Shown one piece after another: positions 9,891-43,771 of a stretch of 64,000 bases of DNA. The translations under genes were made by a program, and so were the position numbers. This DNA comes from Lepidodermella squamata (lineage: Eukaryota; Animalia; Gastrotricha): positions 3,472,001 through 3,536,000 of the forward strand of contig JBLDXI010000042.1 of NCBI GenBank assembly GCA_047495785.1, given 5' to 3'. Numbering within the stretch: position 1 is the stretch's first letter; each line of letters starts with the position of its first letter. The notes beneath the pieces are model-generated. The model made no database searches. It was not told the origin of the DNA and saw only the letters and a program-made list of their open reading frames with translations.

Positions 9891-11079
9891 GCGAGCCGAC
9901 TACGGCAACCTCCGCCGCCGATACTGCAGCTTACGTAGCTGAAACGCGCAGCGACCCGCCCGCCTAGCCCACTACGTTCGACCAGTCAAGATTGAAAAAA
10001 GCGAATTTTGAGATGATAGCCGACTTGGCACTGCTACGACTTCTACGACCGATGCTTACGATTTTGCTCTAGTCAATCACGCGAAGTGGAAGAATTTAGC
10101 CGCCATACTACAAGAATTTACGACTCGACTGAAAATAGCATTAAAATTTCGAAATGATTGTACAATGAAACGTCAATTGATGAATCGCAAACTGTTAGCA
10201 GCCAATGACGAAACTATTGGAAGAGGATCGAAACGTTTCTAAGGCTGATGTTCGTCGAGGATTCGTCAGCGGTATCGCTGTTTCTATGACGGGATGTTGG
10301 TTCTATGACAGCCGATTTCAGTCTAATATTTTCTATTTAGTGATTCGTCTCTACGTGATAAAAGATTGTTATTAATGCCAATTAATCGGTCGCCGCTACA
10401 TCTTCCGTTCTTCGAAAAATGCCACCCACAACCACCCAACCAAAAAAATTGAAACTGAAATTGAACTTTCAATAATTGATTTTTGGGATGAATTTAGTTA
10501 TGATAGCTCACGAAAACAACCGAGTTAAATTACCTTGTGGACTTGAGATAGAAAATAGTTGACAAGGTTTCGAATCTTCGGGTTAGAAAATTCTAATAAC
10601 ATGGTCAGTGCGAAACAAGCTGAATGATTATTACCTCACATTTTCACATTTTGTCGAATTCTACTATCGATCCACATTCCAGAAGAGCCTTGAAGGTCGC
10701 GACCGAAGAACGTTTGTTTTGATTGTGCGTCTCATGAAGAAAGACTGGAATAGTTTTGGAATTTCACGGCACTATACTTCAAGCTACCATTAAACGTTCT
10801 AAAAATGACGTAGAAAAATATTCAAGTAAACCTTTCTCAGTTTGAAAATGGCTTTTACCGACTGATTCGAAGATACAGCTCCTTTGGCGGGTAGACGCAA
10901 GCTCAAAGACAAGAAAATTGAACTGGTCTGCTAGTTCTGCAGGAAACAATAATGCTGACAAATATCTCTAAGCTGTTTGGTACAAAACCTTAAAATTCAA
11001 GATAAACACCCTAAAATTCGTAATAAGCCTTCAACAACATTCTGATTCGCACGCGATTCGTGCTGAGATTATCACAATT

Positions 11080-14000: not shown

Positions 14001-17000
14001 TGAAAAACCAAATTGATAAAAAAACACTGAATTTAACAACAATTTTTGCCTACTTCAAGAAGCTTCGACAGCAGAAGTTGATAGGTCGTAGAAGAATGCA
14101 GAAATTGCAAAACTATGTCCAAAATCGCCCCGATCAGTTGTTTGTATTGACTACCATTTTTCAAAAGATTGATAACCGGTAGAAGCTTATTAAAATGCCC
14201 TTCGAATCTGTCCTCGGAATCCACAAGTAGTTGACTGACAATTAGCGGGGCATTCATTAGATCAACTTGGCAAGATTCAACTTGAATTTTTACAATTACA
14301 AGTAAAAAGAAATATATGATGAGCTCTAAATCAAACAAAGAATTGATACCATGATTTTGAGAAAGACGAGTTGCCAAATACTGTTCAATTTCTTCCATTA
14401 TTTTGTCGCTGTCACCATTAGCTCTTAATTTCTTCACCGCAGCATTCAACCATTTGGCGTTCGCCAGCCACCTGTTTGAAAACTTCTCTTTCTTCGATTT
14501 GCTGGATACAATGCGGGCTTCGTCGGCATAGCGAAGAAGCTCAAACAAATATTTAAAGACAGCCACCTTTTTGGATTGTTTGGCATATGAGTCGAAAATG
14601 TCACCAAAAACCCCGTGTTGGAGCACCTTTCGAGCTACAAGCATATTAAGAAAACTGAATCTCAATAAATTTTCGAATGAATGGAAAAGAGTGAATTTAC
14701 TCCAAGCGTTGACGGAAGTCGGCAGAGGAAAAGGCACTATCCCGAGGCATTTTCGCAGCAACTTTTGTAATTGATTGCTTGAATGAGTAGACTTGATTTT
14801 TCGTATTACCAGGTGTCGAGATGATAGGTTGAGCCTAAAATTAGCAATAAATTCAGGTTATTGAGAAAATTGCCAAAATGAGGAAGACAAATTTCAAAAA
14901 TAATCAAATCATGCAGATATCCAAAGTAATTTGTAACCATGATTATTCAGGTGGAATTTAGGTGGTTTTCGACGGGTTCAGTTCCTGACAGGTCGCAACA
15001 CCTGGCTGCTGGTTTGCAGTTTTGGCGGGGTCGCGGTCAAGTTCTTGTCCATGGTGCTGGCCATCCGAAGAATTTCATTATCTGTCCTTTTGTCCACGAC
15101 GATCAGCTCACGTGCGAAGAAGGCATCCAAGTCGATAGTGTTACAATCAAGCTAAGACATGATATGGCTGTCATGGATAGCCCAGCTCGAGCTATGGTCC
15201 TAGACCAGAAGGGTCACGGCGGCTATTTTTGCTGCCCGTTCTGCCTCATTGAAGGGATTGGACATGGCGGAAAAACCGTTTATCCCAACGGAACCTATGA
15301 GCGAGACATGGCGTGAAGTGGCCAGACTTGCTCAGCAAACTGGTATTGCTCAAGACGGCCTGAAAGACTGGACGAGCGCGCTGGACATCCCCGGATTTGA
15401 CCCGACCAGCCAATGCCCTGTTGAACCTATGCGCAACCTGTACTCGGTGTCGTGCGTTATTTGCTTCTCAACATCTGGTGGAACCCGAGACGCGCCCATC
15501 TGCGTCCGTTGGATGGAAGACCGCCTTAGTGCGAATCCAACGCTATTATACATACATACATACATACATACAGTTCACCGAAATACGTTCAAAATTTGCA
15601 AGTGATCGAGCGTTCTGATTCATTCGCCCTGGAACATTCTTTTTTCCCGAAGTGTTCAAGGTTTTAGTGAATTATTGTTATTTTTAATTTATTGATCTGA
15701 CTGTAATAAAAATTATTATACATTGAATTTGTTCGACGTCGTTTCGATATCTTCAAGTTGGATCGGACGGGCGATTTACATGCAATATCGGCAACTGGAA
15801 CGCGCAACATTTCCAAACATTCCTGCTTGGACGGTGGTCCTATTGCTATTCTACACTTGCTAAAAGACAGCCGAAAACCTGAGGCTGATCACTTCGCCGA
15901 GCTCAGCGAGATCTATCTCAAATAGAAGCCTATTTTTGGCCTATTTTCGGCGGGTCAAGGACGACGATACAGAGTCAACAAACGCTCTGCGAACTCCTGT
16001 CTATCCTTCAACTATATCGTCAGAAATCCACGCAATTGCCTGTGAGAAGTTTGAGCCGCGCAAGGCTAGAGCGATCTACGGCACCAAGCTGGTCGACTAT
16101 TTCATAATCACCTTCGTCATGGGGCGAGAGACCGACTCGACGACGTTGAGGTCGGAGTTACGAGCGTATATTATGTGAACTCGAGAGAGGCGCAGAAACT
16201 CTCATGATCGACTACGCTGATTTCAATCTTCAACATTCGTTGGAGGCACAACGCTCAATCTTCCATGTTACGAAGATCGTCGCGATGCAACGGGCTTTAA
16301 ATTTGACAGATTGCCGAAAGTGATGACCCTAAATCCGCAGAGGCAAGGGGCCTTGGAACTTTATTTCGTCGTTTCTCCAGCCTCGTCGCACTATCGACCC
16401 TGAATTCGATCGTGGGCCCCCTCGCCGGCGTAGCTGTTTATCTCCAGAAAAAGGTGCTCGACCCCGGAGATGTCTTGATGGGAGCTGAACTCGCCATTGC
16501 TGAGATTAAACAAGTCACAATCGAGGCGATGGTCGAAAAGGCGAACTATTACGCGGATTTGTTAGAGCAAAACGGCTTCAAGGTTATCGAGCGTGAGAAT
16601 ATCGATTCTCTGGCAGTCGAAGTCGAGTCCTATCGCGATTTTATCATCGAGAACCTAACCGAAAGGATAGCCGCTCACGCCCTTGAAACACTTCCTTGGG
16701 AAGTTTATGAAGAAGCAAGATCCGGACTTCAAATTAGTAAGTGAATTGAGTTTTTGAATATTGGAAGAAATTAGAAATTGATTATTTTTATAGGGTTGCG
16801 AGGCCGCTGGCTTGCCTTTGTCCGAAGCTTCGAAGATGGAACGAGAATGGGCCAGTTTCAAAACCATTCCTGAGCCTGTGGATTTGAAAAAGTTGGCTAG
16901 CAATCCAATTTTCAAGCATTTAACCCCACATCTGCGCCGGCTTTCTATCCGTTTCGATTCTGTTGTTGATTACTGACTAATTTATGAAAAAATTCGATCG

Positions 17001-18104
17001 CTGAAGCGAACATGAAAGAAAATAAACGAAAAATTGAGTTTGTTTGAAATTAAGGCGGATTGAGGTGTGAAATAGAAAACGCCAGCGAGCGCAGCGAGCG
17101 AACGGGCAAATTTTTGAGTAGCAAAATACCCCTGAAATGTAGCTACCCATCCACTGAGCCAGAAGGCTGGATAAACCCCTGATTTTGGTAATATTTCTGG
17201 GCCTTCCTCCGGTCGTTAAGCTTTACCATTAAGAGCCTTTCCAATCAGTCAGATATTTTTGATATATTCATTGTTTTTATCTTTATTGTTGTTGATTTTA
17301 CAAAAAATTTGCTCGCTTCGCTCGATATCATCAGCTATCAATTTATTTCCTCTTTCACTACTCCTACTCGATTTTCCTCCCTTATCCCTCATGATGGAAT
17401 CCTCTCCCCTCAATTTCTCCAAAAAATTAAACGGGAAAGCAAGGTGAATCAGGAACATTCTGTGAAAATTTCTCGCTTCGCTCGGGGTAAGGTGACAATA
17501 TTGCGAAATTTTGCTATATTTTGTTGATAAAAGGAAAAAATTTTCAACGTGACGAAATTTCGGAATTTCATATGACGATCATATGGCCTGTGTCCGCCTG
17601 GGCTGCTGTAGCTTCGCCACCGAAGGCAAACCCGAAAGGTATGTCCTGTTACACCGTCAGGCCCGGTTCTGGTTTGACGACACGCCATTCGTCACTGAAT
17701 CACTGGTGAAGGAGGCTATAATCTTGACTGCCGAAATTGTCCTCAAATACTAATAATCTAACACGACGGCTCATTATCATTGCAATTTTAATGAATTGCT
17801 TGACGAGGAAAATCATAATTACTGTAACTAAATTACCTTTTCAAGTTTGCAAAGCAAATTGCATATCACGTCTTGCATCTTCCAACTAGAATATCCCTTG
17901 AAGAAGCAAGAATTAAGTCAGAACTGGGAAAATTTGAATATTTACCTCGGATAAAATCATTTTAACATTGTTATCGAATTCTGCTATCGTCCCACATTTC
18001 TCTAAGGCAGACTTGAGAGTCGCAGCAAATGCTTCTATTTGAGACTCCGACGAATCCGGCTTAATCGACTTGACGAGAGCACTTTTTGTTGAAGTGCTGC
18101 CCAT
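11080..18104 (-). CDS. Tandem MIF4G-like repeat protein, paralog B; intron 2 is 3002 bp and filled with TE fragments
   Basis: ATG 18104 (MGSTST), exon 2 ends 17837, intron 17836-14835, exon 3 from 14834 (AQPIISTPG..DFRQRLE). Later ORFs 14033-14761, 13090-13845, 12216-13055, 11468-12139, 11080-11394 are collinear with paralogs A and C. Confidence 0.8.
15100..15460 (+). mobile_element. CACTA/EnSpm-like transposase fragment
   Basis: MDSPARAMVLDQKGHGGYFCCPFCLIEG...VYP, frameshift, then GLKDWTSALDIPGFDPTSQCPVEPMRNL (D.PAra..gh.g..C..C..G / Fd....d.MH motifs). Confidence 0.75.
15548..15571. repeat. (ATAC)6 microsatellite
   Basis: atacatacatacatacatacatac seen directly. Confidence 0.9.
15800..16915 (+). 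mobile_element. hAT-like transposase remnant
   Basis: IVGPLAGVAVYLQKKVLDPGDVLMGAELAIAEIK resembles the hAT L...s..LQ... helix; fragmented, frameshifted ORFs. Confidence 0.5.
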
Positions 18105-18210
18105 GAAAAAAAATCTAAAAAAAATCGGCAAAATTGACAAGGTATTTTTTAAAACTCAATAATCTGGATTCAAATTGCTATTCCAAAAGATTCCAATTGC
18201 AATAATTGCC

Positions 18211-21200
18211 CTATCGAAAGAGAGCTCGTTTAGCGAGTTTGTCATGAGCAATAAATTCAAAATGTCTTTTGCGAGTTTCTTGCGTTTCAACCGGTTCACA
18301 TTTGCAACAAATTTCATCAGTTTGACCAGCAGTTTCTTGAGCAGACTTCGGCACCGGAGTCTCGGTTATTTCGGGTAGATTCGAACCTCCAATACGACGT
18401 AGTAGCGTATCAAATAACTTATGAACAGTTTTGTCGTCACTTTTCGATTTCAAATACCCTCGAATATCGTCATAAATCCTTCCCTTTGAGCCGATAGGCG
18501 CATTCTCGAGCTCGGAAAGTTTCGATTCCACAAAATCAACAGCTCTCGTTTCACCAGAAATTGCAATCCAGTTATTCTAAGAAATAAAATTCAAGAAATT
18601 TCGAATTATGATGGAAAAATAAAAAACCTTATTCAAAATCGCAATATCATTTAAAATCGCTCGTATAGCAGGCGCATCAAAAGATTTAGCTACATTTTCG
18701 ATTTTTCCAACCAACTCCTTGAATCGGTCCGCGATTTTCAGAGTCACCGCATCAGCATAAATCTCCGCCCCAACGTCGCGAATGATAGCCAACATTTCTC
18801 TGAGATTCATCTCGTTTTTCAGTTCCAAGATTTCGTTCATAAGAGATATCAAGTAAGCCACAGGCACAAGTTTAGCCTGAAAAAGTTTCAAAACCAGGCG
18901 TAAACTCATTCTCATCTTATTCGCATGCAGCTTTCTCTCTCTTTCAAGCTTTTCCCGTGACTGTTAGAAAATATATTTTTCAAATATGCGAGAACAATGA
19001 TGGATAAATTTACCAAAGCATCAACGGCTTCCAATTCCGCCATTTCAAGCATGGCGAGGTTATTTTGGTGATGGAAAGGTGAGAACCACTTCAAAACTTG
19101 CTCTTGGACTTCAATCAGCGCCGATTTTCCGCAGTTATTAGTCACATTTCCGACACGGCTGATAAGCGCCACAGCTTCAGAAACAAAATTATCATTACCA
19201 GGGCGATCAAAAATTTCGTCGAGAAATTGAGAAACGTTCGCCGTGAATATTTCAGACGATAAAAATTGCAGCTTTGATTGCCATGAATCGATAGCAAACT
19301 GAATACCGCTTCGCGAAGAAGTAATCGAATCCCGATCAATAGCTCCGGTAGAAGCAAGGGTGGGACTTCGATACCAAGTCTTTTTCTGAAAATTGACAGC
19401 AAAGTTGGAAAATATTCTAAAAAAAATAAAATTACCTCCGAAAATCCGGAAATAATATTTTTGATTTCCAAGGATTTCTCAAGTGGTTCCTCGGATATTG
19501 CAGCTGTTACGAATAGGCACGCATGCTGGAAAAAGACAGCATCATCTTTGCCGAAAATCCATTTCTTCGACTCGTACAAATGGTCGATTTCTTCGACCAA
19601 CCTCGCCATGCAGTAATAATTGGCTGGGTTACTTTTTGCCATAAGCTTCGTAATGTGTTCTCGATAAATTAGAAATTTGAAAACGTCGAGACGAGCGAGT
19701 TCAGAATGAAACCAGAGCTCATTCGCGAGAGAGTCGACGCTTTTGACCGTACGGGTGAACCGTAAAACCCGACGCCATGACCACTCTTTGGCTGCAGCAT
19801 CAAATCTGCAATCATTCGAAGCAATTTTCGCAAGAGATTTTAACAAGCTCGAAAATTGAGTAGCCAATTTCATGCCACGCGATAATTGGAGGACCGAATC
19901 CAAGATTTCGAAAACAGCGTTTCCAAATTCAATTTTTCGCGTCAGTTTCAGCAATTTATCCGCAATAATTTTTGAGATCGTTTCGGTTGAATAGAGACCC
20001 GTTTTCAGCATTTCAATCAGCTCTTTGGTCGATTTCCCGTCATCAGGAACCAATAATGCCTCAGGGGCATCATTTTCAACAGGCCTTCCCACTATGTTTT
20101 CAGCACGATTATCGTTTATTTGTTGAGGAATTTCTCCAATATTTGGCTTTTCATCTTCCTCTTCGTCACTGCTGATGATCATAACGACCTCTTCTTTAGC
20201 TTCTACAGAAGGTTCAACAAGGTTCATCGGTTCAGGTTCGAATTCCGGCTCTAAATTAGCGCTAGATGGCAGGACTTGAAGCCGAACAAGGGCATTGTGA
20301 AACCAAGCTTCTCGCCGAGTTCTGCTATCCCAATGATTCACGGCAAATCGGAAACGAGCTGCCAAACCAGGGTTAGTCACTTTCAAATCCTGAATTTACA
20401 AAACGTTGGCGCAATAATTCAAAATAATTATTGGAAACTCTTACTTGGTTCACGGTTTCAAGAATTCGACCCAAATGATCGGGAATGCTGGTTTCATTTG
20501 CGCAGGCATTGTAAACAATCCACATCACCGTTGAAACAGCTTGGCTAAAAACGCGATCTTGCGGATGAGATCTCAAAGCTTCCTTAAAACTGGCTATCGT
20601 GGCTATATCGGCAGTTCGACTTCCGTTCGCTACTGCTCTCATAAGTTGCTCAAGATGTGTAGTTTGCGAACTGTCCCTCTCGATAGACGCGTTAGCGCGG
20701 GTATTCCGACTGTGCGGCGGATCAATGTCAGCCTGAGATTGTTGGCCCTGCGAAAACCAGCCACCCGTCTAATAAATGTATTCAAATATTGAAACATTTA
20801 AGGAATTAAAAATCTAGCCAACTTCATCCACAAATCTGCAAAAATTTCGGACTTCAGTGTCTCCAATTTCACATTTTCTCTTCAGGAAGAAAAACTTGTA
20901 TTTGATGACATTCGACGTATCCACATCAAACTGCCACGATTCTGATTGCATTAACTCGCGATAGCTTTTCAAAACCAGGTATAGAGACTGGATTTTAAAA
21001 TGAGACAGCGGTTGTGAAGCGACGGAATTCAACACGTATTTGAAGTCCAAAATGCCCATCTTGCACAAAATAATATTGAACCTGAAAGTAAAAGTGAATT
21101 CAAGTTTAAAAACGATCTCATGTGAGCGCAAATAACCAAACGATTTCGCCACATCTTGAAACAGTTTCACACGGTGAGAAACAGCCAGCAATCCAACTTT

Positions 21201-22399
21201 TGACCATTTTGGGGAACTTTCTTGCACACTGAAAACATAAAAACATAAAATTACCCGAATCGAAGAATCAAAATAACATACCCGATCCAGTTGAGCTAAT
21301 AGTAATTCGAAGGTTTGAGACAATGGCTGCTTCTGCGAAATTTTGTCTAATATAAAGTTGACCCGATTTTGCAACAGTAATTTTTCCCCAGGATTTTGGT
21401 TGAAAATAGGACGTAAACGCTCGAAATTTTGGTGAAAATCATCCATAGATCCGGTCTCAATACGCGTCAAAATCTCAGCCAAATTGCCATCTTGAAAGCT
21501 AGGCAAATTGACGTGGTCTGCTACATTTGATGGACCGTTCAAATTGGCAATTTTCTTTCGCAATTTTCTTCTCAAAGTATCGCTCGGAACACTGCCACGA
21601 TTTCGCAAATATTGCTCAATTTCGTCGAATTCAGCATTGTCGGCTCCAATTTTGAGCTCACGAACGATTCCTGCCAAAGTTGTTGCTAAGTGTTCGCGAT
21701 ATCTGAGAGTGGCTCTGTCACGCTTTCGGCAATGCCAAAAAGACTGGTCGACATTGCGCAGAATTTCGTATAAGTAAGGAACGCCACTCCGCTGGTCTTT
21801 CCGCCTCGCAATTTTATCGAAAATGTTGCGGAAAATCAAAGTAGACAGCAGGCCCCGAATAACGAGCAAATTTAAAAATCTGAAAATGAGACACATAATT
21901 ATGAAATTATTCATAGGGGTACCATACTTCAAACGACGGCCGAACTCGTGTGAGAAAGGCGCGTGCTGATCAGGAATCCTAGCAGCAACTAAGGCTAGGG
22001 CCGTTTTCAAGCTGTAAGAACCTTTGCGCCTCCTAATCCCTCCAGCCATCTCGAGCTGAGCTTTGAACTGATTCAGAAATCGGGTAGTTTTCGAACCTTC
22101 AGCAATTAATCAAAATTACCTTTTTGATACGACCGAAGAAACCAGCTATAACTTCTTGCGTATCGATACATCCACACGTGTAGCCCTAAAAGTGAGCCAA
22201 AATCTAAATAAATCACAGAAATAGAGTAATAAATTACCTTGGACAACATTGTGAAGACATTGCAATTGAATTCAGGCCGGGTTTTGCAGCTTTTAAGAAC
22301 AGATTTGATAGTTCCCACAGCGTTATTGATTTGCCTTGTCGACCAATCGGCGGTAACTGATTCCAATAGGTTATTTAATCTCGGTGATGATAACTCCAT
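18211..22399 (-). CDS. Tandem MIF4G-like repeat protein, paralog C
   Basis: ATG 22399 (MELSSP), exon 2 GYTCGCIDTQEVIAGFFGRIKK, short introns only. Contains VVMIISSDEEEDE, WSWRRVLRF..ELWFHSELARL, LVLKLFQAKLVPVAYL..NNW; tail RKR...LAKRALFR*. Confidence 0.85.
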
Positions 22400-22522
22400 A
22401 AATAAAATCTAAAAATGTATAATTTTTAATTACGAGACTAATTTTAGTTTTTCATTGCCAAAATTAAAAAAAATAGGCACCTCCTTCAGCTGACTAGTCG
22501 TATATGTCACAACAATATTTTC

Positions 22523-25500
22523 CTATCGTAGAGAAATCCTTTTTGCGCGAACTTGGTCATTGGATGAGCTAACAACGTGTCTCTTTCTCCCTGCTTCAAT
22601 TTCAACCGGTTCCGGTTTACAATCCGATGCAACGTGACTACAACATTGTTCTTCGGCAACTTCTGCAGGGTTATCAAGATCTCTCTCAATACGATCGACC
22701 AGAATGTCGGCCATAATGTTACAAACAGCATTTGGACAGCGAGTTTTTACAAAATTACGAATGTCAATTAAAGTAGATGTGTTGCGAATCGTGTCACTTT
22801 TTGATAGAAGATTGAGTTTGGCGTTTAATATCACAGCAGTTTTCTGTTCCGGGCTATACGGTACCCATCCATTCTAAATCAAAGAAAATTAGAAAAATAA
22901 TTAGATTTTGTAATTTTTCTACCTCTTGCATTAGAAGTATGTCTTCCATGATATCCTTCAACGAATCTGGGATTTCTTGAGATCGATACAAAACCTGAAG
23001 CTTGGCCAAACAGCTGGCGAATAATTCTGTCATTTCGCATTGTTTTGCCTCCGTTTGAACTGTTAGACCGTACGTTTGAAGTAAAACCATCAGTTCTTTG
23101 AAAACGTCCGAATTTTGAGTTCCTATCATCGCGTCGATGTAAGAAATGAAGTACGAAACGGGCACCAGCCGGTCGTTGAACAGCTTTCCAATCAATTTCG
23201 GGCATTGCACGATTTTGTTGTGGAACGACAACTTTGCTTGGTCGAGATTAGCTTGCATCTGAGACTTGTCTTCGGGCTAAATGAAGGCGAACAAAAACAG
23301 AGAAACCATAACAGGAGTTCATGGATGTTTGCTTCATAAGGTAATTTACGACCGGATTTTTAGGGAAATTGATTTTCTACGATTAAAATTCTTTTATTGG
23401 AAGTCATAGCTATAGCAGATCGTCGGACCCAACATTAATACTTTAAGCTGCAATGTGATTGTTTGCTTTCTCCCTCTCCCAAACCCTTTATGAATTTCGA
23501 ACAAAACTGCGCTCAATCGTTGTTTCGATTCAAGCAACGGATCGTGTGATGGCCTCCTTGTTAAGAAAATTGCACAATGGTTTGCGAAGCATTTTCCAGC
23601 CTGCAGCGTTTTCGAGCCTCGGAAGGGCTAGGCTGCCACCCAAAGTAAACAGCGAGTTTTTAGTTTTCACTCCTGAACACTTAACAAAGGCTTTAGCGGC
23701 ATATCTTTGCTATTGGTGATTTTTTTCTTGATTAACTTCTCGAGATTGTGAGCTAAAGCGGAAGCCCCGCCTCCTAGTGCACCTTCGCTACAAGTGGAGG
23801 CAGTGATGAACCATGGCAAGTGCTCTTTGAATATATGATAAACCTTTATGCCACGAGCGATTTGAAAGAAGCTCGATCTTTCCTGCACAACATTGACAAA
23901 TGTTCCAATATCCAATATCCAATCAGTCAACAGAGAAAGGTGGTAAGAAAGATCTGAGATCTGTTTCAATTTTTGTTTCAATTTTTAATTGTTTGTTTCT
24001 TTAGGCGGACATTGTCGACTGTGGAAATCGAAATCCCGCAAAAAGCAGTGAGGAATTTACGAGTTCCGATGACGCCGAGGCAAAAAGCAAAATATGAAGA
24101 CATCATGGACAGCAAGGTGCAGGGCTGCAATCGGAATGCTGCGCTAAAGAAATGCGCTAATCATATCGACTTGATAACTAAGCCCAACAAAGCGGAAGCG
24201 GAAGAAGACGCGGCATCGACCTATTTGTTATGGTAGGTAAATAAAATCTTCCTTAGTTTAGGTATACGAGTTTTCTATGATGTGGTCAATCTTAAAATTC
24301 GTTACCTTGTTTAATTATTTTCCATAGAGAAACACGATCGAAATAGAGAGATACGTGTGTTTATCCATATGGTAAAATTTACCTATGGGCATGTGAGAAT
24401 CAATATTAACCCAAAAATATGAAAATTTACCTAGATGAAAATACAAAACAGCGCTTAATATTTCCAATTTTTCGTAATTTCAAATTTCCGCACCCTCTTA
24501 AAAATAACTCACAGAAAAACAAGATAACTACGTACGAATAGCTTGAACTTCAAGCAGAGATTTATCCAGCCATCCCCTACCCATCCCCTAGCCATTCCCT
24601 CAAATTGAGCGGTCATCCCCTGAAGTGATCCCCTAAAGAAGAAGTGATAAGCGCACTCAAGTGACGTGTCTTTCTAAAATCAGGCAAAAATCGAAAGATT
24701 TGTCAGAAAACAACAAATTCTGCCGTGAGCTGAAATTTTCGACTGATAAATTATTATCAAACGGTCGCGGAAATTCTGGTCAGAAGTGCCAGCGTTTCGG
24801 ACATCCCACCAGCCATGTGTACCTGGTGTAACCGCACCGATCATAAATCCATCGCCTGCCGCCACGCAAAAGCGTGCGATTACTGTGGTCGCAAGAACCA
24901 CTTGCTGCCGGCATGCATCGACCTATGCCGGGACATAGAGCGAGGCGAGATGGATTCGACGCGCCGCCCTTTTTAAACTGAAACGTCTGACGCGCAGACC
25001 GCCGCCGAGGGCTCAAAAGAGCAAGCCAAAGAAGAGATCGAATCAAAACAATAAAGCCTCAAATAAAAAACCATTTTTTGTATTCAGCTTTCAATCCTGA
25101 GAGTTTCTACGGAAACATCCTCAAGCTTTTCATAAGTTCAAACGATCCCCTGCGTCAAATCGCCACACGCGTTTTGCTGCTCGAAAGCCTGCTACATAAT
25201 CCCCTCAAGTTACACTCTCCTTCGACTAGTCCGCTTTTCTGGAACACCATTAGCGTTCTACTCTTTTTCTATTCAAGCCACGCGCCGAGTGAAAGGCCTT
25301 CCAGTAAAGAAAATTTCACAATGGTTTGCGAAGCATTTTCCAGCCTGCAGCGTTTTCGAGCCTTGGAAGGGCTAGGTTGCCACCCGAAAAAAACAGCGAG
25401 TTTCACTGCTGAACACTTAACAACGGTTAGAAGCAACGGTATTTGCTACTGGTGAATTTTTTTGAAAATTTTTCGAGATTGTGGGCCAAGAAGAAGGGAT

Positions 25501-34500: not shown

Positions 34501-36754
34501 GCTGAACAAGGGAGGCCAACAAGCGAAATCGCAACTCTGACCGCTGCAGATCCAACAACGACGCTCGGGTTCCAGGCCGCTGAAACACCCAAACAAAAGA
34601 AAATGCGCCTTCATAAGCTCATCAACATGTGAGCGTCGTTGATCGAGAAAAACTATTGGCGACCTACTTGGCCCATTCCGCCGGTGCTTTTTTTTTACTG
34701 GAACATTTCCTACATTATGACAAATTTTGCCTGCTGATGTGCATCACATGATCTGCAATAGTAATACTATCCTAGTAAAATGACTCGCCAAACATAACTG
34801 AAATTGTGAAACTGAGTCGCAAGCTATGTATTAGTTAAGCTCGTTTTACTGGTGTTCGAGAACGGGTATTCTGACGTTACCAAAAAAAAGTGGCAAAAGT
34901 AGCGAAAAGAAAGTGGACCAGGCTCAAAATGCAGTAGCACAGATTTCTCGCGAGGTTCGGGAGAAATCGAACGAGTTCGCGAGCTGGTGTCAAACCTAAC
35001 GACGGAAGCTGATGTGTTCACCGTTGAAGAAGAACCATGAAGAACAACCGATTTTTTCCGATTTCATTGTATCGAAAAGGGCAGAAAACGAGATAAAAAT
35101 AAAATACTTGATTACTTTTGTTTTTATTTAGGTGTTGAAATGGGTAAAAGAATCAAGTTGGAGCTCCACGTCCCAAGCAGTGCCATGAGCTCTGTTAGAA
35201 AATTCAACAAAAACCTGAGAGCTGTTTCGAAATTCATCGCTAAAGTTGGTTTGACTGTGAGAAAGAAAACGCTACGCTGCTCTTCTCAAGTTGGCGAAAA
35301 AGCAGCAAGTCTTCCGCAAATTATGGAATTCAACTTATCCTCAATAGTTATGACTAGTTATGTCTGTGAAATTGTCGATATCTACTCGAATAGCTAAATA
35401 CTTCAAATTTTCCGGGTGCGATTAACAATAATAGATACAAATTTGAGCAAATTGAATTTAAGCTTTAAATGGATGTGCGCAAGACTCCTGATGCATCTTA
35501 AAAAATTTCGCTTACAAATCCTACCAAATCCTTAACGGTTAATGTAATGAACGAAGGGTTCTTTACCTCAAGCATGGAAGTCAGCAGTAGCTTATGAGCT
35601 TTCATAAGCGGCTCAGTTTGAGAAGCTCTCGCCAGCATGAAATCAACTGCCTCCGCAAATTCATCGTCTTTCTTCAACAAATGCTTCAGCAGCGGTTTCA
35701 GACGCTCGAAAATCGATGGAAATTCGATGGGATGCGTAGTTTCGAAATGTTTCATCGCATCCGGAACAGTTACTGTTAAAAAAAACAAATTTTCAAGGTG
35801 CTGAATCAATGAAATTTCGACTCACTAGTTCGACCATTCAAAATGTCAAAGATCGGTGGTAAATCTTTTGGGAGCGAACAATCGACGCCATGCTTGTGGC
35901 GATTGCGTGGTGATCGATTTAGCAGGTAAGATTCGATTTCTTCAACATCTTTCGTCCGATTGTCGACCATCAAACGTCGGATCAAATCGTAGATGTAGCA
36001 CGAATACGCTTCCCAGTGTTCGTGCACGCTTCGAAGCGAAGATGATTTCGTCGAAATTTCATCGGCATTACGCAACAAGGCGTCCAAATAGGTCACAGCG
36101 ACTGATTTTGGCTCCAGTTGCGCAAAATGGCGGAAATAAATTCGGAACGTTCGCACAGGCAGAATTTTGCTGATCACCAACAAGTTTAGAAACCTTTTAA
36201 AATTTGAAAATTTGACATCTTTGATGAGATAAATAAATTTTATGACGAACTTCAAGCGTTTCAAAAAATCATCGCCACATGGTCCATTCATTTCTGGCAT
36301 CACGAGAGCTTCTGATTCCAAAACATCAACAAACTTGCAAGAAGACTTTCTCCCCGCATCAGCCAAACTGCCTTTTACATTCACTGACAGCTGAAAGTAA
36401 AAAATTGTAATTTTACTTGAATTTCTCGATTGCCTTTTACCGATTCAATGTCGTATATAATGTCCGTTAAAGCTCGTTGATATCTTGACTCAGATGAATA
36501 TCCCTGGGAAAACGTAATTAGCACATCGTATAAGTTCAGAAAAATCATTTTCAGACCTTGCAGAGGATTGCGTAAACATCAGCTCGAAATTCGGATTTTA
36601 AGGAGGATTCGCTTAAGATGGTCTTCAACGTCGAGCAGGCCGATTTGATCTGAGGTTTTGACAAATTTGACTCGATATTATCGAGAAATTCAAGAAGTTT
36701 TGATGAAGGCGGATGAGTTGGAGCAAGCATCTGATTATTTGCATCTTTCTCCAT
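22523..36754 (-). CDS. Tandem MIF4G-like repeat protein, paralog D; 3013-bp TE-filled intron plus ~7.4-kb TE-rich insertion (may be disrupted)
   Basis: ATG 36754; exons to ~35460, resuming ~28000 (FHNELCKLDLL..), then 26739-27555, 26290-26720, intron 26289-23277, LIGKLFNDRLVPVSYFISYIDAMI..DIMEDILLMQE|NGWVP (clearest MIF4G match), end KRISLR* at 22523. Confidence 0.65.
24005..24233 (+). pseudogene. Isolated exon of a CHD/SNF2-family chromatin-remodelling ATPase
   Basis: ttctttag|...RRTLSTVEIEIPQKAVRNLRVPMTPRQKAKYEDIM...LKKCANHIDLITKP...|gtaggt; matches the SNF2 LRR.K..V...LP.K.E..L...M...QK..Y...LKKCCNH region. Confidence 0.75.
24781..24916 (+). mobile_element. Gag/ORF1-type CCHC zinc knuckles (retroelement remnant)
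   Basis: CTWCNRTDHKSIAC and CDYCGRKNHLLPAC (CX2CX4HX4C twice, 24818-24916); KCQRFGH just upstream in another frame. Confidence 0.75.
25078..25200 (+). mobile_element. CACTA/EnSpm-like transposase C-terminal fragment
   Basis: YSAFNPESFYGNILKLFISSNDPLRQIATR (saF.fE...g.l.......p..Qi motif). Confidence 0.65.
25763..26030 (+). mobile_element. Non-LTR (LINE) reverse transcriptase fragment
   Basis: MYCDTKSAVSV...VKQGDPLSSLLFCLYIDDL...ILFADDVVILS (QG and FADD motifs). Confidence 0.9.
28100..28480 (+). mobile_element. CACTA/EnSpm-like transposase C-terminal fragment
   Basis: HGILSDYDEFGLESYYGRLARFVTGPNHPIDQIAKW. Confidence 0.65.
28884..29036 (+). mobile_element. Buster/SPIN-type hAT transposase fragment
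   Basis: RASFEIAWKIARSKKPFAEGDFIRK (AS..vA..IAk..KPft.Ge.ik motif). Confidence 0.8.
29585..29730 (+). mobile_element. BED zinc finger of a hAT transposase
   Basis: WLVYQQV....NYVKCVSASCSK....DGTGTIKRHTC. Confidence 0.7.
31390..31600 (+). mobile_element. Ty1/copia Gag (UBN2-like) fragment
   Basis: WMKEDAQVRIFIDHHVGADLKHLITGDTAKVQWKSLNKFF (W...D.....I...v......TAk..W..L...f). Confidence 0.7.
32230..32340 (+). mobile_element. hAT C-terminal dimerisation-domain fragment
   Basis: WLFSISPSSERLFSISDHFINPRR (sER.FS.......rR). Confidence 0.65.
32870..32950 (+). mobile_element. CR1/L2-type reverse transcriptase fragment
   Basis: VTNRVPQGSVLGLILFLFFINEI (GVPQGSVLGP.LF..yIND). Confidence 0.8.
33518..35437 (+). 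repeat. ~105-bp direct repeat (33518-33623 and 35333-35437)
   Basis: tagttatgactagttatgtctgtgaaattgtc.atatctactcgaata...tttccgggtgcg in both copies. Confidence 0.85.
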
Positions 36755-36873
36755 CGTATAAAAATCCTAAATGAAGCACCCACAAATTTAGAGAATAACT
36801 TTAATAATATAATCTCAAATCTCAAAAGGAAAAATTGTAAATTTTGGAAAAAAAATTCAATGAGCAAGGCAGT

Positions 36874-38809
36874 TCATTTCCTCGAACTTCGTTCGATGGT
36901 AATGGCAGAGCTTCCAGCAGCAGCAGCATACTGATTTGAATTAAACAGCATATGTAAATTGTTCGCAATGTAATCGTTCAACAACTTGATAACTTGAGTG
37001 CGATTATTCTGCAGCGCCAAATCATTTCCCGTTAAACCAGCTAAATCATAGATAATAAACAATTCTGGCATCTGATTGAGCACAAAGCTTGCAACGTCGA
37101 GGGAACCATGAGCGCAAGCAATATGAAACAACGTTTGGCCGAGATGATTTGCGGCTCGAATGCTTGCCCCAGCGTTGATCAAGTACTTTAAAACCCGAAT
37201 AGAATTTTTCTCCGCAGCCAAAAGGAGAGGAGTGAGATAATCCTTGTTGTAACACTCCAACTCAGCGCCATATTTCACCAAAATCTTCGCCGCTTCGACA
37301 TTATCATTGGCAGCAGCTTCATGAAGAGGCGTGTGTAACCTACCGCCTATGACGGAATTAACCAATTTCGGATATGTTTTGGCTAGGAATTCAGTCATTT
37401 TCTTGCAATTTTTCGAAACAGAAGCATGTAAGACTGTCGCTTTGTTATTTGTCTTCACAATGATTTTCACATTGAATTCAGCAATGATAAATTTGAGCAG
37501 ATCGACGTTATCCGAACCGGCAGCGGCGTGGAAAACTCTGATGCCATTGCTCGTCCAGAGGGCAATTTTTCGCATTTCATTTGGTGGCAAATTACCAACA
37601 GTCGAGCGCAGTTGCTTGAAAAGTTCCAAATCGCCATTTTCCGCAGCTTCGTGAAATTTCGGCAGCAATTTATTCACTTGCGCAGAGGTTGCTCGAGCGA
37701 GTGGAAGCAATTTAGGTACCTCATCTGCTTCTCGATTTTCAGGCTCTTTGGCCTCAACACTGGCAGTTTTAGGGATTTCTGCGACCTGCCTCGTCGGTTT
37801 TGACTTCTCCTTCCAAACAAGGGCACTTTCTAGTGGCAAAGCAGAAAAGCGTTCGATGAGTGAATTCGACAGAATTTGCTGTGAGCCAATAGTCAATTCT
37901 GTAGAGGATATTGTCGCATCGAAGTTTTCGAATTCCTTGAGAAATTTATCACGAGAAGAAACAAGACGATACAGGTTATTGACTTCGTTCAAATCCATAT
38001 GAAGAGCGGATTTTTCTCGGAAACTCTTCACAACATCATCGCTCAATGAAATCTCAGACAACTTGGCCGAAATCTCATACAAATGACTGAGTGTTTCTGT
38101 TGTCGCAGTTTCAATCAGCTGATATAAACGCTGTTTTTTGTCATTCATTATTGCTTCAATTTTTTTGGCGATTTCTGCGCAAGCCAAATCAACTTGCTTT
38201 TGCGCAGAATTGGCATTATCTTCGACAGCTTTTCGAATTCTGTCAAGCGCCTCAGAAATAATTGGACCGAAGTTATTCGTTTTCTGAGAAAAATGATGTG
38301 TGAAAAGTTGGACATTTTTTAGAAAACTCAATACCAACCTTTCCTACAATTGAAAGAATTTCGAGCTTAATTCGCTCTTTATGAATAATTTCGCAGCAAT
38401 TGCAGAACGTGTAGTCACAATGGCCACATTTCTTCCCGCCATTACCGGTATGAGGACAGAAAACACCGGAATCTTCTATTTTCGGCTCAGCATCGAAATC
38501 TTTCTCTTCTTCCTCCAAAATCGACAGCCGATACACTTCAACCATTTTCAGCAGCTTCGTATTAGTTTTTAATTCAGATGGGTCACAATCAATCCAGCTA
38601 ATTTCGCCGCATTTCGGGCACGTAACTTCACCAGCCTCTGTTACCATCGATTCGATGCAGCTAAGGCATACGGAATGGCCACATTGCGGCAAATTTTTCG
38701 GATTTTTCAATAATTCGCTGCATTTTTTACACGCCAAAGCGTTAAGTAAATCCGAATTACTTGATTGTTCAGACGGCCTGGTAATAACGGAAGAACAAGA
38801 AGAAAACAT
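36874..38809 (-). CDS. RING + B-box-like + coiled-coil + ankyrin-repeat protein (TRIM-like E3 ligase), copy 1, ~626 aa
   Basis: Exon 1 38809-38339: C3HC4 RING (CKKC..LPQCGHSVCLSC..CPKC) and CPH-x7-CGHC-x4-CNCC-x3-H. 55-bp intron. Exon 2 38283-36874: heptad-rich helix then ankyrin repeats (TPLHEAA, TPLLLAA, TLFHIAC). Confidence 0.9.
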
Positions 38810-38817
38810 CTAAAAAT
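38810..38817 (-). promoter_or_regulatory. Putative trans-splice acceptor directly before a start codon (representative of one per gene)
   Basis: tattttttag-like U-rich AG abutting ATG 38809, 124 bp after the upstream stop. Similar AGs at ~3367, 7198, 10800, 18116, 22410, 36768, 43710, 47868, 49750, 52992, 56803, 61591. Confidence 0.55.
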
Positions 38818-40843
38818 ACCATTAAAAAATTGTCATTACTTCATAAATTGATATTAAAAAAATCAACAAGGTCAGATCATAGGTTTTGTCAACTCATCAT
38901 CATAATCTCTCACAATCAATGTCTATTTTGATCATTATTTCGGGATATCCTCAGTCGAAGTATCATGGGCCAAGCCGTAACCTTCAAGCAGTCCAACAAC
39001 CTGGGCTTGATTCCTCCTTTTAGCCACCATTAGACCAGTCGCGCCAGACGAGTTCGGCACCGAAACCAGGCCAGGGAATTCGACTAAAATAAATTTGAGG
39101 ACAAGCAGTGAACTCTTCTTACAAGCGAGATGGAAAACAGTAGCGCCGCTCTTATCCTTAGCGTTAACATCAGCACCACGTGAAATCAAGAATTTGAAGA
39201 CACGAAGTGCATCTTTGCAAGCAGCGCTAAGCAGCGGGGTTCGATCGATATCGTCACGAGCTTCAATATCAGCACCACCTTTCAGCAAAAGCTCAGCAGC
39301 GTTCAGACTATCGCGACCTGCCGCGTCGTGCAAAACAGATGACAGAGTAGTGGGATTACGCACAGTGAGCAATTTCGGCTCAACTCGCAGCAAATATTCG
39401 ATGGAGTTTGTTCGATTTAAAACAGAGCATAGACCAAGAGCGCTGGATTGGTAATCCATAGTTTTCAAAAAGAGATCAGGCTTGAATTTTTCAACAATGA
39501 ACTGCAGCAATTCAGCGTTGTCAGAAAAAGCAGCCGAATGGAAAATTGAAAAAGCGCCATCAAAATTGTGGGCGAAATCGCGAAGTTCTTCAGCGCTGCG
39601 ATTCTTCATTTTTTCGTATAAATCAACAAAAAACTCGAGATCGCCAGTTCGGGCAGCTTTGTGAATTTTCGACATGTAAAACTGGTTAGGGACGAATAGC
39701 CCGAGCTTTTCATGTTTTGCATTCTGATCAATCTGATGCGGCTTTTTGTCAAAATTCACCGAGCTAGTCCGATCTCGCCAGATCATGGCATTTTCAGGCG
39801 GCACCTCCAAAATAGATTTCAGCAATGACATTGGAAATATTTCGAGCGGATCGATCGTCAGCTCCTTTTCAAAAGCTTCAGCTTTGAATTTTTCCAACGA
39901 ATCCAAGTTTTTTGAATGGACCCAATTTTTAAATGCAGATCAGCAGCTTCATCCAGGGTCAGAGATTTCTCCCGAAAACCATCGTCCAGGGCGGTTTCTG
40001 GGAATTTGGCGGTGAATTGCTCAAGCTTTGATTTGGTTGATAAGTCGATTAAATCGAACATTCGACGCTTTTTGCTGGCAATGATTGCCTTGAATTTTTC
40101 CTCGATTTTTTGACACGCTTCTTGGGCTCGCATTTTAGCCAGATCGGCCTCGTTTTCAATGCCGTTGCGCACCTGCTCCAACGAGTCTTTTACCGAGAGC
40201 TGGGCGATGTTTTCCTAAAAATAAATGGACAATGTATAAATTACATAAACAATTTGTGTTCCCCGCCGCCTTAATATTCTCCATCTCCGAAAAATCAATC
40301 CAAGAAGGAACTTAGAGAAGCGTGATTTATGCATTCGAAAAGTGGACCATGAACAAACAGTTTTGATTCATTCTATCATGAAGTTCAGCGCAATTTACTG
40401 ATAATTTAAAGAATGAAAGAGAAAACTGCGTATAGGACGAAATCCCGTGCCAATTACTCAAATGCGTTATTTTTCAGTTACTCTTTCCTAGACAAGTTAC
40501 CTAGCCATCATTATATAACAACTCAGATTTTTCGACCCATCTTTCATTCTTCAATTCTCGATAATTTAGTTGCCCATTGGCCGTAGTAACAACAGCCACT
40601 TTTTAACGAAGCTCAGTCGAAATAAGATTAAATTGGCAGCTATTCGGCAACACTTGGATGCCATGAAGGCCGAGGCAGCGTTCAACAAAACAACGAAAAG
40701 AATCTCATTCCACGATGGCGTCCTTATCTCAAGCCCAGTCATCAACTATTCTCGGTAGATGTGAGCGAAACTGATCCAAACGAAATTCACTCAACGTATT
40801 TCCTAGCATTTATATTGACATTTTTTATTATAATATATAAATG

Positions 40844-41000
40844 TATTGCTGTGCCAGATTTGCAACGAGCAACCAGACGCCGCAAGTTCGTTCGTGTGTA
40901 ATGAATGCAAAAACCTCTTCTGCGGTAGATGCCACGAAACATGGGGTCGAATCAATCCGACTTGTGCCAATTGCCGATCGGCGGATGGCTATTTCCAAGT
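40844..41000 (+). pseudogene. RING-like (C4C4-type) zinc-finger exon fragment, antisense inside the TRIM copy 2 intron
   Basis: LCQICNEQPDAASSFVCNECKNLFCGRCHETWGRINPTCANCRS..FQ|gtgagt. Confidence 0.65.
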
Positions 41001-41026
41001 GAGTGTCTAGCTCATTGTTCTATATA

Positions 41027-41225
41027 CAGTGAAACCCCGATTTGGCGTCATCTACGGGCCGGCCAAAAAATCGGGCTGGAAATCCGAAAAGACGGATAAT
41101 CTGGGTCAATTTACATGCAATGTAATGCTGCGGGGAAAAATGAAGATTTTTCATCCCCTTATCTTTTGCATACCCGGATTTCCCGCAGACGGAAAATAAA
41201 AGGACGCCAAATCGGGGTTTCACTG
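41027..41225. mobile_element. 199-bp Tc1/mariner-type MITE with perfect 23-bp TIRs and TA target duplication
   Basis: TA-cagtgaaaccccgatttggcgtc ... gacgccaaatcggggtttcactg-TA. Confidence 0.92.
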
Positions 41226-41471
41226 TATTATTGATCGTTAATGAGATTCTTGGGCAACGAGAGCAACAGCAGCCAATCATCGAGGTCCTGCCCTCTCAGC
41301 GAAAAATCTGCGAGGTGCCGATTCTTGTATGATTTTTTGTGTAGTCAGTAGTGCTCATTACGGTTTGCGGTTTACATAATGGAAAAAAGCCGTGGGAAAC
41401 GATGCGTTGAAACAAGGTTCTGTCTGTCTCGCACTCTGTCACAAGCTTAGCTCACCTGATTCGCCTAATAG

Positions 41472-41914
41472 CAGAGATGATCATGGGTCGGGTCACCTTA
41501 GTATATGGGTCCTTTGGTTCAAGTTTTTGCGTCCTTTACAAATGTCTTGTGTCGCCTTGAATGGCCCACGCTCATCCGAAGCTGAAAGGCATTTCAGCTC
41601 GCTGGGAACCACGGCTACGCCAGACAGAGCCCGGCTTAAGCCCGAAGTTGTAGAGACGCAAATGTTGCTGTTTCAAGCCATGAAAAGTGGACACCTGGTC
41701 TGTGATTTGTGAGCTAGAAGATATGTGAAAATCTTTGCACTTTTTGACAATTGAGAATATAGCGCGGCACGCATAAAAATAACGTAATCAGTAATCTGCT
41801 TCAAATTACGTAATTGAGTTATGTGGGTCACATGGGTTATAAAAGTTGGGTCCTGGGCCCCCGCCATGGATATCCTCGGGTCTTGAGTTGCTTTTTTACC
41901 CATTCTCATCTCTG
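41472..41914 (+). mobile_element. Non-autonomous hAT derivative with 17-bp imperfect TIRs and dimerisation-domain coding only
   Basis: cagagatgatcatgggt ... acccattctcatctctg (15/17 match); internal SSEAERHFSSLGTTATPDRARLKPEVVETQMLL; gggtc subterminal repeats. Confidence 0.75.
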
Positions 41915-41949
41915 GTTCCGACAGTTTGCGGAGGAGCTGGAGGATTTTG

Positions 41950-42200
41950 CACTGGCTCTTGCGTGGTAAAACAGTCGATCGTTTTCTCAAACTCCTGGAG
42001 ACAATTCTGATATTTGCTCAAGAAGAAAGCTTAGAGTTCGACTAACGTCTTCTGACTTCAAAATTCAAGGTGGAGCTGGCTTTCGTTTCTGATGTATCGG
42101 ATGAATAATAACAGCAAATTTCAAAATCGAACCTGTCCATGTTTGAAGTTGGAGACTTCGCAGCCTTCAAAGCGCTGTTTGATGACTGGTTGACGTTTGT
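41950..42200 (+). mobile_element. Buster/SPIN-type hAT transposase fragment
   Basis: HWLLRGKTVDRFLKLLETILIF...VELAFVSDV (RWLSRGK.L.RF..L / LAFL.D). Confidence 0.8.
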
Positions 42201-42660
42201 CGAAGAATCAGACTTTGACCTCTATTCAACGAAACTTTGTCTGCTCTGGAAGAAAAGAATCACCCCTTGCTGCTAGATTACCTTCCGATGCACAAGGATG
42301 AATGCAAAACAGGATTCAATTTCCGAGACGACAAGCGATTCACAATCGTGATTCAAGCGTACGATTTCGCAGCTCGGACAGTTCTGAGGCTGCTTCAATC
42401 AGTAACAAGACCATGGCATTGCCTCAAGCCGGCGAGAATGAATGATTCAAATCGAATTTGCCGGGTACTCACGGCCGCGAGTCGCTTCTGCGCAGGCTTC
42501 GTTAAATTGGTTACGGAGACATTGGGTTATTCTGGCTACACAACAATCGTCTCGTCCTGAGTTGCAAGGATTCTTATTTGATTTTGTCTTTAAAAACCAT
42601 CAAATTAGCATTAATATACGGAGAAAGTTGGAATATACTGTGGAGACTCCGCCGGCCATT

Positions 42661-43192
42661 TTAGGCTCCGACCACAAACTGCTACATGTTAGGCTTGGAC
42701 CATACTGATTCATACTTTGAAATATCATTAGCCCGTGCCAATTTTTTTATTTCATTTCCTTAACCATTGTAATTCTCTCGGTGAAATATTTGTTCAAAAT
42801 TATGAAAGAATAGCTTGACTACATCTATTTCGGTTGACGAATCCTCAAGTCGTCGAGGCCGTGGCAACAGCTGCAACGTAGAATAACGTATCACTGTTTT
42901 TCCGATGATTAAATGTGTTATTCCGATGAATTAATTGGTTTCAATGGGTAAAATAAATAATCCGATGGTTCCGATGGTTTAAGACAAAACTAGCACGATA
43001 AAAGTATTTAATGTTCCGATGATTTGATATTACTTCTTAGGCTCCGACCACAAACTGCTAAATGTTAGGCTTGGACAATACTGATTTATACTTTGAAATA
43101 TTATTTGCCCGTGCCAATTTCATTTCATTTCCTTAACAACTGTCATTGTCTCGGTGAAATATTTGTTCAAAGTTATGAAAGAATAGCTTGAC
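42661..43192 (+). repeat. ~157-bp direct repeat (42661-42819 and 43037-43192)
   Basis: ttaggctccgaccacaaactgcta.atgttaggcttggac ... ttatgaaagaatagcttgac in both copies; the spacer carries several tccgatg units. Confidence 0.9.
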
Positions 43193-43771
43193 CCATAAAT
43201 TATCAAGTAGAAAAACCTTTTCAAGCCGTTCCAAGATTTCGCTCCTGATCCTCTCGACATGAGCGGTTTCACGGGAACAGCAAAATTCCAAGTTGCAATG
43301 CTTGCAAGTTTTGCGGTCGAGACTCGAATGAGAACACGATTGAGCAGCGGCCTGAACCACCGGACCATTTTTCTCCACAGCTTCACTGCCAGCAACCCCA
43401 CCAGAATGAAATCTGGCGAAAGCATCCACTGTGTTCTGTAATTTTTCATTCGTCTTCAGCAGCGAAACGTCACAGTCAATCGAATTGATTTCTTGACACT
43501 TCGGACAGGTAATTTCTCCGATTTTCGAAACGCCAGATTGAATGCATGCCATACATAGTGAATGTTCACAATGAGGTAAAATTTTCGGGATTTTGAACAG
43601 GTCGTGACAAAATCCGCAGGTCAGCGCCATGCGAAGTTCGCGATTATTCGCCAACGCACGCGGTCGATCGGAATACATTCCAAAAAAAATACAAAATAAT
43701 AAAAAAATCTAGAAAAATGCGATTATTGTTCAACAACAAGCTCAAATTTTATTCTAGTATAAAAAATCAAA

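Follow-up and report, generated by a model that had tools for sequence, protein, structure and literature searches.

Long introns of two gene families

The window analysed here is a 64,000-nucleotide stretch of the Lepidodermella squamata genome (contig JBLDXI010000042.1, positions 3,472,001 to 3,536,000). It carries members of two gene families, a set of lettered paralogs and the RING-ankyrin copies, and we observed that several of their genes are interrupted by introns of a few kilobases. The features discussed below are the following.

14835-17836, minus strand: long intron 2 of paralog B, 3002 bp; bounded by GT and AG, with flanking exons that keep register with the paralogs
23277-26289, minus strand: late long intron of paralog D, 3013 bp; RT and SNF2 relics, split internal duplications
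24383-24431, minus strand: candidate recursive (AG/GT) sites, 48 nt apart in the 3013-bp intron; predicted from sequence only
27897-31757, minus strand: long intron 6 of paralog D, 3861 bp; Copia gag relic
31758-31852, minus strand: coding exon of paralog D, 95 nt; homologous to exon 5 of paralogs A, B and C
31853-35566, minus strand: long intron 5 of paralog D, 3714 bp; four internal duplications
40215-43216, minus strand: long intron of RING-ankyrin copy 2, 3002 bp in this haplotype; spliced in cDNA; hAT relic
41027-41225, no strand assigned: Tc1/mariner-type MITE, 199 bp, within the intron of RING-ankyrin copy 2
45098-47386, minus strand: long intron of RING-ankyrin copy 3, 2289 bp; integrase relic
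7489-10533, minus strand: 3045-bp interval between a pseudogene donor and the strong acceptor that follows it; its 3' side is a candidate intron end
1-3074, minus strand: intron 2 of paralog Z, with a genuine donor; no 3' end was located within the window

A first-pass annotation had proposed that giant introns here converge on about 3.0 kb. All of its intervals start with GT and end with AG on the minus strand, and its three best cases held up as introns. Paralog B exon 3 is in register with paralogs whose intron 2 measures 50-79 nt, and the gene model with the 3002-bp intron 17836-14835 removed is open over 1204 aa. The 3013-bp intron 26289-23277 shares its position with a 53-nt intron of paralog C, and its acceptor scores 5.7, compared to -1.5 for an in-frame alternative that would give 3031 bp. 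The codon position of 43216-40215 matches that of a 55-nt intron in RING-ankyrin copy 1, and a cDNA contig omits exactly these 3002 nt (CT..AC ends); this support is a single contig with 22 nt on its short side, and it carries the other allele. The 2289-bp intron 47386-45098, at the same position in copy 3, was likewise upheld. What had been described as a 7.4-kb insert proved to be two introns of 3714 and 3861 bp flanking the 95-nt exon. This exon is required, since gene D is an open 1091-aa reading frame with it and stops at codon 331 without it.

The two less certain cases fared worse. An intron of about 2990 bp from 3074 to 83/87 would end at acceptors with scores of -2.7 and 0.2 (trained sites: mean 6.9, minimum 1.6), and no exon-3 homology lies downstream; intron 2 of paralog Z probably runs past the window edge and exceeds 3074 bp. 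The 3045-bp interval 10533-7489 has a homologous donor, but the sequence past 7489 shows no match to exon 3 (p 0.15-0.5); what weak likeness it has is to exon 1 (p 0.012-0.5).

This leaves six solid long introns, at four non-homologous positions and, as proposed, in two gene families. Their donor and acceptor scores average 5.8 and 6.9, compared to 5.3 and 7.0 for short introns, and with GT..AG ends in host-like context they have the features of U2-type spliceosomal introns. Removal from RNA together with presence in DNA was seen for 43216-40215, the other five resting on paralog alignment. We read the long introns as ordinary GT-AG spliceosomal introns.

Signals inside the introns were also assessed. 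The 3013-bp intron may be processed in pieces: candidate recursive sites with a PWM sum of 16.0 (local-shuffle P 0.003) would split it into 1859, 48 and 1106 nt, which would count against a ceiling on intron length. Among eight introns, this is the one with a strong site of this kind. A structure-bridged intron, with its 5' and 3' parts folding back on each other, was rejected: permutation of own against cross duplexes gave p 0.31-0.77, and the z for local folding was near 0.

Long introns are patchworks of transposon relics

The long introns share no sequence, as the first-pass annotation had noted (best cross-intron E 0.018), and a search for motifs common to them found none. Their content is a mixture of unrelated transposon relics in which only 100-600-bp pieces of many elements remain, together with internal duplications of 70-94% identity. 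Intron 2 of paralog Z holds a Tc1-type element of ~700 bp at 1240-1943. All six Pfam-readable relics (Tc1 HTH, RT, SNF2, hAT, integrase and Copia gag) lie antisense to the host gene, as transposon fragments do in unistrand piRNA clusters, with E values of 8.5e-8 to 0.014 (4/6 below the Pfam cut-offs). None was found among 30 host-strand ORFs; some of the plus-strand ORFs had been selected by eye. Stop-free stretches of at least 100 aa (30 versus 12, p 0.008) were counted toward the same orientation. Sense-strand splice motifs inside the long introns show no depletion, so that purging of splice signals does not obviously account for the orientation; this also counts against a length ceiling. 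A depletion of sense-strand acceptors or poly(A) signals was likewise rejected. The intron ends are AT-rich. The spacers between genes are mostly 62-125 nt long and free of visible relics, and most have a T-rich AG directly upstream of the ATG. No Rfam RNAs were found in the window.

The intron 43216-40215 differs between haplotypes. Its 199-bp MITE, with a 26-nt perfect TIR match, TA flanks and about 30 copies by depth, is absent from the second haplotype, as are a further 129 bp; allelic indels amount to about 10% of the intron's length.

Intron lengths fall into two classes

The six solid long introns measure 2289, 3002, 3002, 3013, 3714 and 3861 bp (CV 0.18). The 84 short introns, 34 identified by paralog alignment and 50 by an ab initio model, measure 46-117 nt (median 52), and none of the 90 introns in this one window lies between 117 and 2289 nt. 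The window thus has a minimal-intron peak, a trough and a long class, as in teleost-type bimodality. The long introns span a 1.69-fold range, for which P is 7e-5 under a log-uniform distribution from 120 to 20,000, 9e-4 under a lognormal with sd 1.0 and 5e-3 with sd 0.7. Their sd(ln length) is 0.19 (95% CI 0.12-0.46; window chosen post hoc). With n = 6 long introns in a window picked from 1,993, a genome-wide lognormal of sd 0.7 would yield 2.5-10 similar-looking windows by chance. A nucleosome-like periodicity of lengths was also tried and rejected: the best period, 142.5, had p 0.04 for six lengths but 0.40 once a seventh was included. Taken together, the 2.3-3.9 kb long class hints at a soft size limit, one window being short of proof.

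A proposed soft length ceiling on transposon-filled introns

The reading we favour, tentatively, is that long introns grow by transposon insertion until they reach a soft ceiling maintained by selection. Short introns stay at about 52 nt, and an intron would leave this class when a transposon lands in it. In a tightly packed run of same-strand genes, the escaped intron would be the only tolerated landing site, so that insertions continue there. Selection against added length, setting in near 3-4 kb, would then favour deletions; these would leave scraps of elements, and lengths would accumulate at 2.3-3.9 kb. As to the most likely cause of such a ceiling, we speculate that spliced-leader trans-splicing, which the animal apparently uses, could increasingly read a distant acceptor as the end of an outron and yield a truncated mRNA; long introns have been proposed to act as outrons in Schistosoma (PMC5832876). 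No spliced-leader addition was seen in the present data, which speaks against this reading. Premature 3'-end formation might act instead.

Simulations are consistent with a ceiling within limits. Toy neutral border-induced models gave CVs of 0.55-2.2 (P≤0.014 against the observed 0.18), and a strong soft cap with an insertion:deletion ratio of at least 4 gave 0.13-0.17. The cap model is narrow for some parameters only; when the ceiling was weak or insertions were few, lengths were no more tightly distributed. The introns and their sizes, the mixed relics, their antisense bias and the ongoing indels are observed; the ceiling and its genome-wide reach are inferred. It is possible, if rather doubtful, that the genome as a whole holds a narrow second class (~3 kb, CV ~0.2, possibly with a 3.0-kb spike) under length-dependent selection, filled with antisense transposon scraps that turn over completely.

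Alternative explanations

An ordinary broad second mode, teleost-like and running from ~0.3 to 10 kb with a peak near 2-3 kb, could also have produced this window by a lucky draw, and we consider this a doubtful but real prospect. Zebrafish introns peak at 76 and about 2000 bp (PMC9438311), chance arithmetic over ~2,000 windows permits an sd of 0.5-0.7, and the upper 95% bound of sd(ln) for the six values reaches 0.46. Against it stand the empty interval between 117 and 2289 nt, the P≤0.014 of the neutral toy models, and the two uncertain cases, which likewise lie at or slightly over 3.0 kb.

It appears improbable that the long introns serve a function of their own and are held near 3 kb by an optimum with limits on both sides, as small heterochromatin islands or as an antisense transposon 'memory' in which the excised intron yields piRNAs or siRNAs. 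Simulated stabilising selection does give CVs of 0.15-0.22, and the uniform antisense orientation, not obviously accounted for by splice-signal purging, and the AT-rich ends would fit. However, the cDNA run is without intronic contigs except for a repeat, and the relic count is tempered by ORFs partly picked by eye and by hits mostly under the Pfam cut-offs. Moreover, elements within introns can come to lie mostly antisense to the host gene for passive reasons.

A precise ruler that keeps a subset of introns at 3.00-3.05 kb, the strongest claim of the first-pass annotation, is still less probable. Three of the six lengths fall within 11 bp of each other (P≈0.002 under a smooth mode), and within the window a spike-plus-broad mixture is preferred (ΔBIC about 10-12). 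But this test was made after the fact, and 1-4 such tight triplets are expected among about 2,000 windows; three of the six solid introns deviate 24-29% from 3.0 kb; and two of the five supporting cases (2990 and 3045 bp) fail. The other haplotype of 43216-40215 lacks ~390 bp in the 3' third (its 5' half may compensate), and without the MITE this intron would measure about 2.8 kb. The off-size half, the failed cases, the haplotype indels and the chance expectation thus leave the precise ruler unsupported. What stands of the original proposal is ongoing insertion and deletion inside a bounded long class, as borne out by the unrelated relics, the diverged duplications, the haplotype-specific MITE and the gap between the classes. 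A ±1% ruler on intron length is unlikely, and the match of 3002, 3002 and 3013 bp is probably a chance cluster within the long class.

Programmed DNA elimination or acquisition cassettes, a single mobile 3-kb family of Introner type, and an amplification or assembly artefact (the probable source genome was produced with multiple displacement amplification; PMC11660948) have a negligible probability together, and we reject elimination and artefact: the joined form of 43216-40215 occurs in cDNA only and is absent from the DNA run (contigs from one run, which could lose a rare joined form), DNA contigs cross both exon-intron borders, per-haplotype depth is 57-65 in the intron and 57-62 in the exons, and the long introns share no termini or sequence and have their splice sites at ancestral intron positions.

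Comparison with known systems

Long introns raise the question of what sets their size; known long-intron classes are broad and mostly fit a neutral balance of indels. Introner elements give rise to many introns of similar length, which share sequence and create new intron positions. The long introns here share no sequence and occupy ancestral positions, and are thus distinct from Introners. We know of no size class described for plant intronic heterochromatin. Its likeness to the present case lies in transposon-filled introns within expressed genes; there, ASI1/IBM2-AIPP1-EDM2 is needed (PMC9292364). Unistrand piRNA clusters of the flamenco type are also patchworks, in which pieces of numerous transposon families lie antisense to the transcript (PMC10643416). 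In contrast to these, the patchwork here is divided into ~3-kb pieces that lie in introns of protein-coding genes, and it includes DNA-transposon relics.

In the literature searched we found no description of such a narrow long-intron class, and the word 'intron' is absent from the genome paper (PMC11660948). The border-induced selection model (PMC9748784) likewise lets an insertion-deletion balance between conserved exon borders set length, but our simulations of its neutral version give CVs of at least 0.55 compared to 0.18 here. If the narrow class is general, additional length-dependent selection would therefore be needed. Such a class, with full turnover of content, would let selection on intron length itself be read directly. 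The animal would then obey an upper limit on intron length that can be measured, possibly set by trans-splicing competition, chromatin or a small-RNA unit. Both haplotype assemblies (heterozygosity about 3%) and the RNA-seq of the species (the genome paper names SRR1273732) make this testable with existing data; should the class be broad genome-wide, the finding reduces to ordinary transposon-expanded introns. A similar pattern is found in teleosts such as Danio rerio, which have a sharp minimal-intron peak, a trough and long introns of a few kilobases, whose paralogous and orthologous introns switch class, and in which transposon expansion is implicated (PMC9438311). The teleost long class is described as broad, starting from about 256 bp (PMC9438311), whereas the six long introns here occupy 2.3-3.9 kb above an empty zone of 120-2,280.

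Gene layout of the window

The L. squamata genome (122 Mb, 157 contigs) was obtained from a single amplified individual with 2.99% heterozygosity and was sequenced alongside C. elegans (PMC11660948). The window DNA is 41% GC and every gene lies on the minus strand.

Genes and example intergenic spacers
first in the row, minus strand: tandem orphan-family paralogs Z, A, pseudogene, B, C and D, ~1,100-1,200 aa
after the orphan tandem, minus strand: three RING-coiled-coil-ankyrin genes (RING-ankyrin copies 1-3)
beyond these: four further genes with short introns only
18105-18210, 22400-22522, 36755-36873, 38810-38934, 43679-43771, 47846-47959, 52977-53038: spacers

No database relatives were found for the orphan family (3681-36754), whose helical fold bears a weak likeness to that of MIF4G domains (best E 0.004). 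Orphan gene families likewise without database relatives occupy 47960-64000. Spacers are mostly 62-125 nt long, show no visible relics of mobile elements and in most cases carry a T-rich AG shortly upstream of the ATG. Judged from the sequence, the one-strand run over 64 kb shows operon-like packing and is a candidate for SL trans-splicing; the cDNA contigs contained no spliced leader.

One conserved exon recurs at 4523, 11853, 19066 and 26353; the steps of 7330, 7213 and 7276 bp come about through ~4.2 kb of gene and one ~3-kb insert, differently placed, in every interval. RING-ankyrin copy 2 owes its frameshift at 39907 to an assembly error, as DNA and cDNA runs both carry one extra T; those of paralog A, near 6330, 4870 and 4810, may likewise be errors or may mark a pseudogene. 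Within 38935-43678, the cDNA contigs of RING-ankyrin copy 2 carry the non-reference haplotype alone at the sites listed. For copy 3 both alleles are seen. Allele-specific expression is one possible reading, a difference between strains another.

Long introns range from 2.3 to 3.9 kb

The first-pass annotation proposed that giant introns converge on about 3.0 kb. We aligned the paralogs against each other with a purpose-written spliced aligner, and the three firmest cases of that annotation were borne out. B intron 2 (17836-14835) is 3002 nt, with 79, 52 and 50 nt at the same place in A, C and D, and the exon downstream scores 194, far ahead of any other match (background 56±11). The late D intron (26289-23277) is 3013 nt; its counterparts in A and C are 49 and 53 nt long. 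Near 11830, paralog B lacks the intron present in A and C (49-53 nt) and D (3013), an intron loss. The RING-ankyrin intron measures 55, 3002 and 2289 nt in copies 1, 2 and 3. Among reads mapped to 38800-44700, the cDNA run, which carries SMART adaptors, has a joint from which precisely 3002 nt with CT..AC ends are missing.

Two further cases failed, and one insert had to be corrected. For the ~2990-nt case in Z (donor at 3074), the scores of the 83/87 acceptors are -2.7 and 0.2, with no exon 3 behind them; therefore this intron probably continues beyond the window. The 3045-nt case in the pseudogene (10533-7489) has a real donor, but the sequence past 7489 is not exon 3. Inside the supposed single 7.4-kb insert lies a 95-nt exon (31852-31758), and exon 5 is its homologue in the paralogs; with this exon, gene D has an open 1091-aa frame, and without it a stop at codon 331.

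The corrected long introns are 2289, 3002, 3002, 3013, 3714 and 3861 nt (mean 3147, CV 0.18). For the short introns (n=84) the median is 52 nt; no intron in the window set falls between 117 and 2289 nt. The lengths 2289, 3002 and 3714 follow one another at even steps (713, 712); testing for periodicity gave no robust result.

Long introns are patchworks of antisense relics

As first described, the long introns share no common sequence when compared with each other. Each contains short relics of differing elements.

Relics and elements in long introns (Pfam E-values)
antisense to host: Tc1 helix-turn-helix relic, 8.5e-8
antisense to host: reverse transcriptase relic, 1.7e-7
23958-24233, plus strand, antisense to host: SNF2(-helicase) fragment inside the 3013-bp intron, 4.8e-4
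antisense to host: hAT dimerisation relic, 0.009
antisense to host: Copia gag relic, 0.011
antisense to host: integrase relic, 0.014
1240-1943: Tc1-type element in the Z intron, ~700 bp, inverted repeats of 152 nt (95% alike), truncated transposase

The SNF2 fragment may derive from a host gene or, alternatively, a large mobile element, and the Tc1-type element is a recent insertion. A Pfam search of 30 host-strand ORFs found no such relics, and long stop-free stretches number 30 antisense versus 12 sense (p 0.008). Duplications within the introns (70-94% identity), some of them since interrupted by further insertions, record repeated gain and loss. Intron ends are AT-rich; no mutual pairing of 5' and 3' ends was detected. 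Inside long introns, the host strand carries more donor-like motifs than the antisense strand does (27 versus 13, p 0.04; 66 versus 44 by PWM). In the 3013-bp intron, two strong AG|GTAAAT sites at 24431 and 24383, 48 nt apart (shuffle P 0.003), form a candidate recursive or zero-length-exon pair that could permit stepwise removal.

A soft ceiling is the preferred explanation

That all six introns lie within 1.69-fold has P 7e-5 to 9e-4 if the null is broad, rising to 5e-3 for sd(ln) 0.7; scan-wide correction excludes the broadest null alone. A narrow long-intron class is suggestive, not proven. In toy simulations, neutral indels between fixed borders, tuned to ~3 kb, gave CV 0.55-2.2, and a soft ceiling gave 0.13-0.17, requiring strong insertion pressure and strong selection; two-sided selection also gave narrow lengths. 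Should the class prove general, intron length would therefore itself be under selection.

We tentatively favor insertion pressure set against a soft ceiling on intron length, a reading we hold at somewhat less than even confidence. Since the short spacers show no visible relics, long introns act as the sink, in which scraps, not whole elements, survive. As a first guess, the ceiling might arise through trans-splicing competition, given that the genes are packed operon-like, with acceptors ahead of the start codons, and that long introns have been proposed to be readable as outrons (PMC5832876).

An ordinary broad mode, of which this window happens to be a lucky draw, is a serious though weaker contender. 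A functional antisense or heterochromatin cassette would fit the strand bias of the relics and seems unlikely. A precise ruler, with length held at 3.0 kb by balanced insertion and deletion, is improbable: three of six introns within 11 bp has P≈0.002 under a smooth mode, or 1-4 windows per 1,993, so the tight triplet is no evidence for it. The introns are real; exact convergence was overstated. The second haplotype of the 3002-nt intron of RING-ankyrin copy 2 also speaks against a precise ruler: over its resolved 3' half it is missing 133 nt (40692-40824, replaced by 4 nt) as well as 259 nt (41011-41269), and a 199-bp MITE with TA flanks and ~30 copies falls within the second of these gaps. 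Programmed elimination, also raised initially, or artefact can be set aside, as haplotype depth is equal and the DNA run over 38800-44700 lacks the 3002-nt joint.

Comparison with known intron size distributions

That the narrow class extends genome-wide is conceivable, but we lean against it; the 2.3-3.9-kb class with its antisense patchwork is a lead that merits pursuit and is cheap to test. Teleosts already provide a known case of bimodal intron sizes, with peaks at 76 and ~2000 bp (PMC9438311), and so is the indel-balance theory of intron length (PMC9748784). The teleost long class is broad, in contrast to the candidate narrow class described here, and any novelty would lie in this narrowness.
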